A DNA stretch of 64,000 bases, from NCBI GenBank assembly GCA_965637545.1, contig OZ281500.1, forward strand, positions 10,354,001-10,418,000, read 5' to 3'. Shown here one piece after another: positions 1,516 to 7,500 of this stretch. The notes beneath the pieces were generated by a model. It had not been told where the DNA came from and made no database searches. It worked only from the letters and a program-made list of their open reading frames with translations. This DNA is from Phallusia mammillata (Eukaryota). Position 1 is the first letter of the stretch, and each line of letters opens with the position of its first letter. The translations under genes were made by a program, and so were the position numbers.

Positions 1516-4500
1516 TTAAGAAAGCAGACTCTTGATTTCATCTTCCAGGTCGTCGTCTGAGCGTTTTGATTCTTGCGACTGAGATTGTACATGCTCACCG
1601 ACCATTTGTGCAAGTTGTTCGTCACTTTCTGCTAAAGTTTGTATTTGATGCAGCTGTTGCTGTTCCTGAAAAAGAAAAATACAGTCAGAATTGTTAATTT
1701 TGTTTGATTAAAAACTTTTTTATTTGCAAATTTGTTAAAGATCTATGAAATTCAAAAAGTGGTGCAATTAGATTACAATTTGAAGTTGACATACTTGATG
1801 CAACATTTGGTTGTGGTTATCTTCAAGGATGTTTAGGTCGTTGAGAGTTTTGTGCATCAAGCTTTCCAATTCACCTTGGCTATGCGCTTCACTCTGAATC
1901 ATTTCATTAATCGCGTCCTAAAAAATCGTATTTGTTTACCCGCAGTTCGTATTAGGCCTATGTACACAGCAAGAAAGTTTTTAGTTACAATATTGTTCAA
2001 ATCAGTGAGTATTTTACATTTTTTTACCTGGATGCCCGAGTTCAGTTCCTTGCTCTCACTAACGTCCTCCGCTTTTGCTTTGCTGAGTTCATCAATAGCA
2101 GTACGGGTCTTTTCTTGCAACTCTGCAGGCACTCCAGTCTCCCTGGATGACGACTGTAAGTTGCTAATCACTTGTCTAAGTTGACTTTGAACTTCTTGCT
2201 GCGCCTTTTGTTGGAGTTCAGATTGCTAAAATAAGATTATCACACATGTGAAAAACATAATTACGTATTATCTTTCAAACATAGAGATCAGTATATTAAA
2301 ACTTATTCTAATGATTGCTTGCTTAAGAAAGACTCATACCATTTCTGCTTCTTTATTAAGGCCATCAATTTCGCCTTGTATTTGCTGTTGAATTTGTTTC
2401 TGATGCTCAACGCTTCCAGTGTTCCAGCCTCCAGCGTTAATCTCGTCCATGAGGGTCTTGATATCTCCGTCCAACACATCTTGCATTTGGTTGGCGTCGT
2501 TAAGCATCTCTAAAGCACCATCGGTTTGTATTTGGTGTTGGGACTGGCTCTGATGGGATTGACTTTGTGTCTGCTGTTGGGATTGGCTTTGTGACTGTGA
2601 AGATCCGGTTTGAGATTGAGATTGGTGTTGACTTTGACTTTGGGATTGACCATTGCCCGTAGAAGATCCTGTACCAGTACCGGTACCCGTATTTTCTTCA
2701 CCGTTAACAAGGCCGTCAATTATATCTTGAACTTGATCTTGAATTGAAGCAATCTCTCCCTGACTTTGGCTTTGTGATTGAGATTGAGATCCGCCACCGG
2801 CATTTGGGCAGCACATTACACGGATTTCATAATCCTCACATATCGGGTGTACAGTTTGGTCATCACCCAAGCACGCCAAACCAGAATTCAAGTCGCAAGA
2901 AACCACTTGCCATTGCTGGTAAGAGGCAAAATCGTCAACAGTACCGTCCACTGGCTTGCATTCGATTTCGACAGGCGCTTGACAAATTTCATTGCCAGTT
3001 GAGATAATGTGCGCGTATGTTTCGTTGTCATCACGTTGAGGCAACTTTGGACGGTCGGAGTTAATCCAATCAGTCCAGTAACACGCTTCGGTTGTAGTTG
3101 TCGCAACAGTAGTAGTGGTAACAGGAGTTGTCGTTGTCGCAACAGTGGTGGTGGTGGCAGGAGTTGTCGTTGTGGCTAACGTGGTAGTAGTAGCAGGTGT
3201 TGTTGTCGGAGGTGGAGTTGGTTTTGTCACCTTCTGGGTTGTAGTGGTTGGTGCGTTGGGTACAGTGACGGCAATAGTTGTGGTCTCACCAGAACCAGAT
3301 TCCTCTGTGGTGGTTTCGACTGGTGGAGTTGGTTTCGTCACCTTCTGGGTTGTGGTGGTTGGTGCGTTGGGGACAGTGACGGCAATAGTTGTGGTCTCAC
3401 CAGAACCAGATTCCTCTGTGGTGGTTTCGACTGGTGGAGTTGGTTTCGTCACCTTCTGGGTTGTGGTGGTTGGTGCGTTGGGGACAGTGACGGCAATAGT
3501 TGTGGTCTCACCAGAACCAGATTCCTCTGTAGTGGTTTCAACTGATGGAGTTGGTTTCGTCACCTTCTGGGTTGTAGTGGTTGGTGCGTTTGGTACAGTG
3601 ACGGCAATAGTTGTGGACTCACCAGAACCAGATTCCTCTGTAGTGGTTTCGGCTGGTGGAGTTGGTTTTGTCACCTTCTGGGTTGTAGTGGTTGGTGCGT
3701 TTGGTACAGTGACGGCAATAGTTGTGGTCTCACCAGAACCAGATTCCTCCGTAGTGGTTTCGGCTGGTGGAGTTGGTTTCGTCACCTTCTGGGTTGTAGT
3801 GGTTGGTGCGTTTGGTACAGTGACGGCAATAGTTGTGGTCTCACCAGAACCAGATTCCTCTGTGGTGGTTTCGACTGGTGGAGTTGGTTTCGTCACCTTC
3901 TGGGTTGTGGTGGTTGGTGCGTTGGGAACAGTGACGGAAATAGTTGTGGTTTCACCAGAACCAGATTCCTCTGTGGTGGTTTCGACTGGTGGAGTTGGTT
4001 TCGTCACCTTCTGGGTTGTGGTGGTTGGTGCGTTGGGGACAGTGACGGCAATAGTTGTGGTCTCACCAGAACCAGATTCCTCTGTGGTGGTTTCGACTGG
4101 TGGAGTTGGTTTCGTCACCTTCTGGGTTGTAGTGGTTGGTGCGTTTGGTACAGTGACGGCAATAGTTGTGGTCTCACCAGAACCAGATTCCTCTGTGGTG
4201 GTTTCGACTGGTGGAGTTGGTTTCGTCACCTTCTGGGTTGTGGTGGTTGGTGCGTTGGGGACAGTGACGACAATAGTTGTGGTTTCACCCGAACCAGATT
4301 CCTCTGTAGTGGTTTCAACTGATGGAGTTGGTTTTGTCACCTTCTGGGTTGTGGTGGTTGGTGCGTTGGGGACAGTGACAGCGATAGTTGTGGTCTCACC
4401 CGAACCAGATTCCTCTGTAGTGGTTTCAACTGATGGGGTTGGTTTCGTCACCTTCTGGGTTGTGGTGGTTGGTGCGTTGGGAACAGTGACGGCAATAGTT

Positions 4501-7500
4501 GTGGTCTCACCAGAACCAGATTCCTCTGTAGTGGTTTCAACTGATGGGGTTGGTTTCGTCACCTTCTGGGTTGTGGTGGTTGGTGCGTTGGGAACAGTGA
4601 CGATCACAGTTGTGGTTTCACCAGAGCCAGATTCTTCAGGGGTTGTTTCAACTGGTGGTGTTGGTTTTGTTACTTTCTGTGTTGTGGTGGTTGGTGCGTT
4701 GGGAACAGTGACGATCACAGTTGTGGTTTCACCAGAGCCAGATTCTTCAGGGGTTGTTTCAACTGGTGGTGTTGGTTTTGTCACCTTCTGTGTTGTGGTG
4801 GTTGGTGCGTTGGGAACAGTGACGATCACAGTTGTGGTTTCACCAGAACCAGATTCTTCAGGGGTTGTTTCAACTGGCGGTGTTGGTTTTGTCACTTTCT
4901 GGGTTGTGGTGGTTGGTGCATTGGGAACAGTTACGGCAACAGTTGTGGTCTCACCTGAACCAGATTCTTCAGGAGTTGTTTCGACTGGTAGCGTTGTAGG
5001 CGTCGGTTTAGTAACTGGTTTTGTTGTTGTTACAGGGGCTTGTGGAGGAGTTGTTACAACAGGGGGAATTTCAGTTGGAGAACAAGAGGAGGTACAATCA
5101 CACGATGCAACATCGTTGTAGGAATATGAAACTTGTGTGCCGTTCTTGCATTTCAAAGCAACTACTTTGTTGACGGTAGATGTAGGTTGACAGCATGAAC
5201 ACTGACTCTCTGATCCATATTCGGACCAGTAGAATTGTCCACGACAAAATCCGTCACAATATGACATGACAACTGGTTCTGTCGATGCGCAACCGTCTAT
5301 GACCATATATTCGGCGTTGGTGCTGATTCGTCGTCCACATGTGAAGCATTCCTCGTGTACGCACTTCAAGCAACACCCATCCTCGGTGGGTTCCACTGAG
5401 CCACCTGTTGATTCGCATGCGTCCTGGTCAAATGAGGGGCACGGGTTAGGGTAGCAAGCCTCTTCGAAGAATCCAGAAGTGACGTTCATGTTGTTTGTGC
5501 AACCACAAGTGTTACACTTATCGGGAGCCCAACTGGCTCCAGGCTGTAACACAAAATCGCAATGAACACACGTAGCATTAATTCAAATTCAATTTGCTCA
5601 GGCCAACAAAAAACAAGGCTTATTGCAACAAAGTTACGCACGCCATCCTCGGTATTTCCAAACATTTCAAGTATTCGATAAATTTATATTTTGTACCGGT
5701 TTAGCCATTCCGTCTCCACAACACACGTTGTCTGGCACACAGCGGTATTTGGTGCAGCAATCTTCCTCGTAGGTTTCAAGTACAAAGCATGAGGAGCAGG
5801 TTGGCATGTTCGGTGGCGGGCAAACGTAAGGCTGGTCTATAATTACGAGCGTGCCTTGATCTGGGCCACAGATATAAGCGGAGCAGTTGCTGGTGTAACC
5901 CCACATCTCACCAACCTGGTTAAAAGTAAAATAAAATTGTTGCTGAAAAACCGTAAACAGGCATGTCAACGCAACGAATTTTTTTCACTTGGAAACAAAA
6001 GCAAACTTGTTTTTGCGCCATTAAGTACAGGCTATAAGAATGCAGCAAACATATACCAAGAATAAAAAAAGCATTGTAAATGTGCTGGTTTATAGTGATA
6101 ATACTGGAATAAGCGACTTACGTTTTTGCATTCAAGACTTCCATCGGTGTGTGTAACAGCACAACCGTTTGCCACGCACTGGCCACAACATTGACCAACC
6201 GGTGTCACGTAATCATGACAGGGTGGACATCTGGTGTCGCAGCTTGCCACCGAACAGGATGTTTCCAAGCATGATGTCTTCTCATCCGGCTTTCCGGAGC
6301 AAGAGCAGTGAGTACAAGGGTCGGGATTCCATTCGTCGCCAGACTATAAAAAAACATGTTGTTTCAGATTTTCATTTAGGAGTCTGGAAAAGTCGAACTG
6401 GTATAATTGGTTAATTGACGGTTTTATTCAAACCACTATTTTGACCCGACGTACATTTATCATTTTGTGCATCCGTCTTATTAGTTCCATCTTAGAAAAG
6501 CTAACGTTCCATAAACCCATATTGTTTAAACAAATTATTAGTCACCATAACGATCAGGTTTAGTTAAAAGCATCAGGTGTAGTAATCAATTACGTTACAT
6601 GCCTACATACTGCATTTTTTGTGTGACTCGGTAAAAAATTCTTTAGATCGGGACCTCGACTCCTAGTGTTTTACACCAGAATATTTTTTGTGCTAAAGTT
6701 TAACTAACGGGTAATCTATCTGACTAACGTTATGTAATGTTCCATTGTAGAGACATGTGTTCAGTGACTGGCAAGAAATAATTCTGCATCCCCTCTCATC
6801 AACTTCGACCGATGTAGCTTCACATTGCGAGCACACCACGTCTTCCGGACAAGGTTTGGGTTCTAAATAAAACACATGGTTATATTTCCTAACGACAAAA
6901 ATGTTTGTGTCTAGAAAAAACGAGATTTTGTTAAAGCAGAAATTTCATCCCGTTTTTTTTTTAAAAAATAATCATCCCGACTTTATCATTACAGCAGTGG
7001 ATAATCCTCTTAAAAAATAATATTTGTTATTACATACCACAACTGTACAATGGGCAGCATTCCGTGTGTGTGGTAACAAGGTCATAAAGGTCACCGCATT
7101 CCGGTGCAAGGGGGCATGGGTTTCTTGATTTGTTGCAAACACATTCGTAGGTTGGAATGCACTCTCCCTCGTTCGTCTGGATGGCAACGTATCCTGGTGG
7201 GCACTTGGGGACAGAAACTGCCGGGCAGCTTTCGCTTCCTTGTCCCAGAGGATAGTTGCAAGCTTTGAAAGAAACATTTTTGAAGAGTTTATCACACGGA
7301 TCGGTCGCTATGCAACACAGTCAGATAACATAGTATATTTTAACTCTTCAAACGTGAAGGTAAAATTTCGTATTAAGCAAAAGATTGCGAAAAAGGGGCA
7401 GACTTACTGCAGTCATATTGCGGACAACATGGGTCGGTGGTAAGACGACGAAGAGGAACTTCGCAAACACCACATGACGGAACAGTGGCCTTGAAACCCG

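Follow-up and report, generated by a model that had tools for sequence, protein, structure and literature searches.

In the gel-forming mucins of vertebrates, the domains rich in proline, threonine and serine (PTS domains) and the CysD domains lie between the D3 assembly and a C-terminal block of D4, VWC and cystine-knot domains, with the knot at the very end of the protein, and we know of no description of glycosaminoglycan (GAG) attachment to any of these mucins. In tunicates, Ci-GFM1 is a gel-forming mucin that proteomics has identified in the envelope membrane, framed by chitin, of the Ciona gut (PMC6109156; LC072665); it is 2880 residues long, carries a head of EGF, FN2 and chitin-binding domains and a central PTS region of 50 residues, and ends at the knot (PMC6109156). 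The present analysis concerns a predicted mucin gene on the minus strand of a 64,000-nucleotide stretch of the Phallusia mammillata genome (GenBank assembly GCA_965637545.1, contig OZ281500.1, positions 10,354,001 to 10,418,000; this whole stretch is hereafter called the window, and positions are counted from its first letter) and, in particular, a tandem array of Thr/Pro-rich units that follows the cystine knot, each unit of which contains the acidic motif EESGSGE. What appears to be new is an acidic G-S-G-E core that is shared by five related lineages although their units have otherwise diverged. A gel-forming mucin seems to possess a PTS domain in an unusual position after the knot, with a conserved and multiplied candidate site for GAG or phosphate addition.

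Ci-GFM1 and the window gene are alike in their tunicate mucin/VWF scaffold, in which D assemblies are combined with VWC modules and a cystine knot. However, while Ci-GFM1 ends at the knot, the window gene runs about 1150 residues further in the same frame (about 910 in one large exon, plus three predicted tail exons). On comparison with the published description, with the Ciona savignyi protein H2Z9B9 and with the protein model P0002, the window gene is of the Ci-GFM1 type and probably orthologous to Ci-GFM1. P0002 itself would be Ciona-like (it is about 85% identical to a Ciona savignyi protein in the best-conserved stretch, and 55% over the whole gapped BLASTP segment) and, unlike the published Ci-GFM1, reads past the knot into a PTS region with EETGSGE. 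The difference in length between the Ci-GFM1 cDNA and the window gene may mean that the published cDNA represents a short isoform or a truncated clone, or may be a true difference between species. With MUC2, MUC5AC, MUC5B, MUC6 and MUC19 of vertebrates, the window gene shares VWD-C8-TIL assemblies (matched by Pfam in the upstream minus-strand frames), CysD (PF13330) next to a Thr/Pro/Ser tandem-repeat domain, and a cystine knot, although the latter is internal rather than terminal. The assignment to the gel-forming type that had been made from the unannotated letters in the original prediction is thus borne out by VWD, C8, TIL, VWC, cystine-knot and WxxW/CysD domains.

Other relevant systems are found among proteoglycans. 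Lubricin (PRG4) and the Caenorhabditis elegans proteins CPG-1 and CPG-2 are mucin-like, O-glycosylated and carry chondroitin, and the latter two combine chitin-binding domains with their chondroitin sites; they differ from the window gene in having other folds and no gel-forming mucin scaffold and, in the case of lubricin, just one site. The GAG site of thrombomodulin reads SGSGE. Thrombomodulin is a carrier of chondroitin sulfate (CS; PMC4598785), and in the v3 isoforms of CD44 GAG addition has been proven for an SGSG that lies in the O-glycosylated stalk and is shared by mammals (PMC2531186). Both proteins resemble that of the window in having an acidic-flanked Ser-Gly-Ser-Gly in a Ser/Thr/Pro-rich O-glycosylated region, which in their case receives heparan sulfate or CS, but they are membrane proteins of unrelated sequence with a single site, whereas the window gene is predicted to encode a secreted, polymeric mucin with 16 in tandem. 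The CS domains of aggrecan and versican, as well as serglycin, are alike in their tandem Ser-Gly sites with acidic residues, in their many GAG chains and in their bottle-brush form (PMC4598785), but have no dense Thr/Pro mucin units between the sites and no VWD/CysD/knot scaffold. The closest working analogues would be CD44 v3, thrombomodulin and lubricin, all of them part-time proteoglycans, together with aggrecan and serglycin, and all are unrelated to the window gene in sequence.

The array consists of 16 units of 111 nucleotides, all of which encode EESGSGE in the minus-strand frame at a spacing of exactly 37 residues, as had been predicted; the interval originally given for it (3210-4985) describes the same array as that used here (3207-4982) with a register shift of one codon. 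Tandem Repeats Finder delimits it as 3211-4996, with a period of 111, 16.1 copies, 94% matches, no indels and a score of 2837. The expected Thr/Pro-rich mucin composition was also found: the 592 residues of the array include 34% Thr, 14% Pro, 11% Val, 11% Glu, 6% Ser and 5% Gly, the Gly residues being confined to the motif, and each unit contains four Glu against two Lys. Pairwise identity between units ranges from 81 to 100%, and two subtypes are recognized, namely units 1-4 (with Pro before the motif and Val after it) and units 5-16, which differ from each other by 10-19% at the DNA level with a change of just 2-5 of the 37 residues. Recent internal copying is seen within the array (units 9 and 15 are identical; units 8 and 11, and units 9 and 14, are 99% alike), and the copy number probably differs between individuals. 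As the units are duplicates, finding the motif in all 16 is weak evidence for its importance, and counts as one observation rather than 16.

The minus-strand frame spanning the array is the coding one; it is open for 1072 codons (2334-5552), with a Pfam match to the cystine knot ahead of the array and another to Mucin2_WxxW after it. On the opposite strand, a Val/Gly-rich frame of 668 codons (3115-5121) was rejected as a gene, being without domain or relative; it is open because it mirrors a stop-free Thr/Pro-coding repeat. Differences between the units are mostly synonymous (mean proportion of synonymous differences, pS, 0.24; of non-synonymous differences, pN, 0.035; ratio 0.14), which indicates, indirectly, that the array is translated. 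For the seven codons of the motif the corresponding values are 0.29 (pS) and 0 (pN), with synonymous variants in four of the seven and no replacement, an observation that is suggestive at most of constraint on the motif. Purifying selection acts on the whole unit and not on the motif alone. Of the 37 positions, six vary in amino acid, and their all falling outside the seven-residue motif has a chance probability of about 0.26, calculated as (30 choose 6)/(37 choose 6) for units that are not independent.

A more informative comparison is that between lineages. The relatives, which are protein models and marine contigs, were collected through a word search with the CysD-tail part (leading to Ciona savignyi H2Z9B9), an HMMER search of the whole library using the VWC-knot part (five close relatives), a word search with P0002 (which added P0115) and a scan of JGI metagenome contigs with the CysD alignment (six loci). 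A word search with the repeat region itself (residues 190-790) gave no match at E <= 0.01 among proteins of 590-1876 residues and is uninformative for longer models, and exact look-up of P0001 and P0002 returned no matching contig. In all the relatives compared, the knot or the PTS region reads into CysD in one frame, and several of the loci also carry the Ser-Gln (SQ) stretch and the helical tail; the post-knot layout is, therefore, a trait of the family.

Within this shared layout, the contigs L004 and L005 encode at least six units of 29 residues (period 87), with a motif identical to that of the window; P0002, a truncated model, has at least one unit, with the motif given above; L006 and L007 have two units of 31 residues (period 93) with EPEGSGE; and P0115 (on L003) has a single expanded unit, in which a run of Ser-Gly pairs ends in an acidic Ser-Gly-Glu cluster. 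The G-S-G-E core is, thus, exact in five of the seven lineages and sits in the same linker between knot and CysD; it is preceded by two acidic residues at positions -2 to -4 in four of the five, and no Lys or Arg lies within eight residues of it. By contrast with the core, which is 100% identical, the 22 residues on each side are about 39% identical between lineages (much of this being Thr) and contain indels, unit length ranges from 28 to 37 residues, and the codons of the core differ synonymously from lineage to lineage (e.g. GGT versus GGA, GAG versus GAA). By CysD identity, the window groups with Ciona savignyi and P0114, and P0003 groups with P0115; the module is present in both groups. 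Other elements of the unit, such as KPTP and PEAP-like stretches, are likewise conserved. The Ser-Gly module is absent, and there is a short linker only, in P0114/P0004 (L001, L008 and L009) and in P0003 (L002). Anchoring the comparison on G-S-G-E was an ascertainment step, and the outcome is to be read as five of seven lineages with the exact core and two that have lost the module. Of the 115 relatives and cystine-knot matches that were fetched, P0002 and P0115 alone showed an acidic Ser-Gly pattern.

Two of these contigs, L006 and L009, come from the same metagenome (JGI24158J21664) and form a pair of their own: their sequences at the C-terminal side of the knot are identical and their CysD domains are about 90% alike by eye, but where L006 carries two G-S-G-E units, together with a long SQ array, L009 has a linker of 35 residues without Ser-Gly. 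This may be a presence/absence polymorphism, or the two may represent either sister species or recent paralogues.

How well such a site would suit the enzyme that starts GAG synthesis can be judged from what is known of the human peptide O-xylosyltransferase XT1. The acceptor Ser needs Gly or Ala at +1 (PMC5992326); the residue at -1 is uncharged and usually Gly, acidic neighbours are generally favoured and basic ones disfavoured (PMC5992326; PMC13038410), and the syndecan-1 peptide crystallized with XT1 reads G-S-G-E around the acceptor (PMC5992326). In the motif, Gly follows each of the two Ser residues. The second Ser also has Gly in front of it (-1) and Glu at three further positions (-4, -3 and +2), and is free of basic residues for eight positions; it sits in a low-complexity PTS context, and the site recurs in relatives (five of the seven lineages). 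The second Ser fits all these published preferences of XT1, the first, with Glu at -1, being a poorer candidate. The original prediction had described the motif as the xylosyltransferase consensus: the agreement with the preferences of the enzyme holds for the second Ser, while the word consensus is too strong for an enzyme as promiscuous as XT1 (PMC13038410).

The proposed mechanism is as follows. The Thr/Pro part of each 37-residue unit would bear dense O-GalNAc glycans, while the acidic G-S-G-E module, with two Glu ahead of it, would be a recognition site for peptide O-xylosyltransferase, so that some units at least would carry a chain of the chondroitin/dermatan or heparan type on what would be a mixed mucin and proteoglycan. 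These chains would add fixed negative charge and hydration to a chitin-based gut membrane or to mucus, and the array would act as a long spacer from the cystine-knot dimerization domain to the CysD domain and helical tail of a secreted, disulfide-linked mucin. Repeated Ser-Gly pairs and acidic clusters favour heparan sulfate, but acidic residues flank chondroitin sites too (PMC4598785), so that the chain may be of either type. Ascidians are known to make dermatan sulfates (PMC9267682); the literature on chondroitin glycoproteomics of peritrophic matrices and on ascidian xylosyltransferase offered nothing directly usable. O-glycosylation, xylosylation, chain type and tissue are what we infer, whereas the repeat with its coding frame, the domains around it, the purifying selection on it and the persistence of the module in several lineages are established.

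Several points weigh against GAG attachment. XT1 is promiscuous and GAG addition is predicted by no sequence rule (PMC13038410), and the S-G-E of the motif also fits the S-x-E that is recognized by the FAM20C kinase. The paper describing Ci-GFM1 mentions neither proteoglycans, GAGs nor a region beyond the knot (PMC6109156). Within the array, motif-specific constraint was rejected as evidence, given the chance probability of about 0.26 and the non-independence of the units. Furthermore, the module would seem to be dispensable, two lineages being without it, and transcription of the exon is predicted, the runs X1 and X2, discussed below, giving just short low-depth contigs.

On balance, because the site is conserved across lineages, the GAG hypothesis now appears better founded than before, and plausible. 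That a GAG chain is present on at least some units would be, in our estimate, a little short of an even chance, and 16 chains are to be regarded as the upper bound, so that the '16 or more' originally proposed was an overstatement. The broader proposition, namely that ascidian mucins of the Ci-GFM1 type are true mucin-proteoglycan hybrids with an acceptor for xylosyltransferase in each unit that predates the split of the lineages, is slightly more tentative, though possible.

An alternative explanation is that the module receives no special modification and serves as a flexible hinge or charge spacer, acidic and rich in Gly and possibly with O-GalNAc on its Ser residues, which has been kept for the stiffness, spacing or cation binding of the bottle-brush. 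The peptide is, indeed, acidic in itself, purifying selection extends to the whole unit, with the KPTP and PEAP-like elements kept as well, and two lineages manage without the module. A generic hinge would, however, tolerate exchanges among Ser, Thr, Ala and Gly and between Asp and Glu, whereas G-S-G-E is exact in five lineages whose CysD domains are 52-70% identical, and we consider this explanation rather unlikely, if the most serious of the alternatives to GAG attachment.

Less probable again, though credible, is that the motif is a substrate of a FAM20C-type Golgi kinase, which would phosphorylate the second Ser; the first Ser, now in the context S-G-pS, would then become a substrate in its turn, and each unit would bear one or two phosphates instead of a GAG chain, with effects on, e.g. 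calcium-dependent packing or charge. The consensus of FAM20C is S-x-E/pS, SGE sites being cited as examples (PMC6443332); S-G-E is invariant in all five lineages and in every unit of the window, and the alternating Ser/Gly run of P0115, which ends in SGE, would permit stepwise priming. What phosphorylation leaves unexplained is the Gly at both -1 and +1, and the runs of Ser-Gly, which are typical of GAG cores. Because Gly is kept on both sides of Ser, there is a mild tilt towards GAG attachment over the kinase, on a comparison of five lineages only. The two modifications of the motif are not mutually exclusive.

The quality of the underlying sequence was also considered. The window contains no N, and four sequencing runs (X1, X2, X7 and X8) were compared with it over positions 4880-6420, beside the array; the run search found none on record as RNA among those matching the locus. 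X7 and X8, which come from another study, are DNA: their contigs pass through the introns without joints and match the window at 99% or more, bar two single-letter differences. They cover the edge of the array and its flanks, and at this edge the word depth increases several-fold, which agrees with a repeat present in many copies. The two differences (5328 T>C in X7 and X8, 5853 G>T in X8) are likely to be ordinary polymorphism. X1 and X2, which are RNA by guess only, contribute one short low-depth contig each, inside the exon, that of X2 running from 5255 to 4934, i.e. from the knot into unit 1. That the array has been collapsed or expanded in assembly, or that the post-knot part is missing from the mature transcript in favour of a shorter isoform ending at the knot, is very improbable, for although the published Ci-GFM1 cDNA, obtained by rapid amplification of cDNA ends, encodes 2880 residues with a C-terminal knot (PMC6109156), no run is on record as RNA and the copy number of a 1.8-kb array with units 94% alike is difficult to get right in an assembly, there is no stop between knot and array in the window, seven related loci read into CysD in one frame, divergence is biased towards synonymous changes, the X2 contig enters unit 1 from the knot and the DNA runs cover the flanks.

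The position of the array within the gene and the related loci are given in table 1. In the large predicted exon, a VWC-like part, the cystine knot, the PTS array, a Thr-rich repeat, CysD, an SQ/TG-rich stretch (TG, Thr-Gly) and the start of the helical tail follow one another, and the C-terminus of the protein is, thus, predicted to comprise VWC, knot, Pro/Thr lead-in, 16 units, 12-residue Thr repeat, CysD, SQ/TG stretch and helical tail. The exon is bordered by a cag acceptor (5546-5544) and a gt donor (2339-2338); splice sites are predictions from GT-AG boundaries, continuity of the frame and the matching exon in relatives. The three small tail exons predicted are all in phase 0. The knot scores 24.7 bits in Pfam, where the cut-off is 24; identity to the knots of relatives is 46-65%, and the cysteine pattern aligns with that of six of them. 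The CysD domain is 52-70% identical to those of relatives, the highest value being that for Ciona savignyi H2Z9B9.

Table 1. Features of the predicted mucin gene, in the order of its reading, and loci in which knot or PTS region and CysD share one frame.
Feature	Positions	Strand	Basis or remark
Upstream exons of the same gene, with EGF, VWD, C8, TIL and VWC modules	5667-28800	-	Pfam matches on ten open frames
Large predicted exon, 1068 codons	2340-5543	-	open frame, splice signals, matching exon in L001, L008 and L006
Cystine knot, internal, in the same exon as the repeat	5079-5300	-	Pfam PF00007, frame residues 85-158
Pro/Thr lead-in linker from knot to first unit, already with the KPTP element of the unit	4983-5078	-	translation
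16 tandem units of 37 residues, each with EESGSGE	3207-4982	-	Tandem Repeats Finder and translation
Second, short repeat of Thr-rich units of 12 residues (four Thr followed by Pro/Leu/Val and Ala)	3091-3203	-	Tandem Repeats Finder, period 36, 3.1 copies
WxxW/CysD domain (Mucin2_WxxW)	2811-3077	-	Pfam PF13330, E 6.8e-21, full length (1-88/88)
SQ-rich and TG-rich low complexity, then Q/E/L-rich start of helical tail	2340-2810	-	translation; Tandem Repeats Finder 2550-2597
Predicted tail exon, 66 codons	2028-2225	-	ag/gt boundaries, frame continuity; similar exon in L001 at 9816-10052
Predicted tail exon, 41 codons	1795-1917	-	predicted from sequence
Predicted last exon, stop taa at 1518-1516	1516-1665	-	predicted from sequence
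One-frame locus, window	1516-5543	-	
One-frame locus, L001	7986-9176		
One-frame locus, L002	10001-10915		
One-frame locus, L003	10001-11053		
One-frame loci, L004-L009			

Some further observations were made on the regions surrounding the array and on the relatives. After CysD, the window gene has runs of Ser-Gln and Thr-Gly dipeptides (2550-2810, minus strand), and the SQ arrays are much longer in L005 and L006. In L004 and L005 there are two CysD domains with a PTS region between them, in a frame that is open across the whole of the contig (2.3-2.5 kb), and a long Ser-Gln-rich repeat of 18 residues that has D-E-G at its start (period 54, 7.7 copies). On L003, a second cystine-knot frame of 153 residues (16976-17437, minus strand; probably P0005) lies about 6 kb downstream of the P0115 gene and on the opposite strand, which suggests that this genome has two mucin-type genes arranged tail to tail. 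Finally, in P0098, a distant cystine-knot match of 466 residues, the part that follows the knot (residues ~320-466) is an acidic repeat of eight residues with K-T-S-G-E-A-D-S as its consensus; acidic Ser-Gly tails after the knot may recur, therefore, outside the mucin family of the window.

Gel-forming mucins and proteoglycans are usually treated as separate routes to hydrated, charged extracellular polymers, and one chordate protein may be both, with a candidate site that several sea-squirt lineages have kept and that is present 16 times over in the window gene. Whatever the modification, this tunicate family of gut-membrane mucins has a large extension of PTS, CysD and tail beyond the knot, which lies outside the published description of Ci-GFM1 and changes how the polymer network should be drawn. 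Should the motif be a phosphorylation site or a plain hinge, it would still be a clear case of a mucin repeat that evolves fast around a short, enzyme-like motif that does not change. If, on the other hand, GAG attachment is true, no gel-forming mucin with GAG chains would have been known before this one, a chordate would draw the fixed-charge GAG of its chitin-framed gut membrane from the gel-forming mucin itself, and the protein would provide a molecular bridge between the peritrophic-matrix proteoglycans of invertebrates and the mucus of vertebrates.

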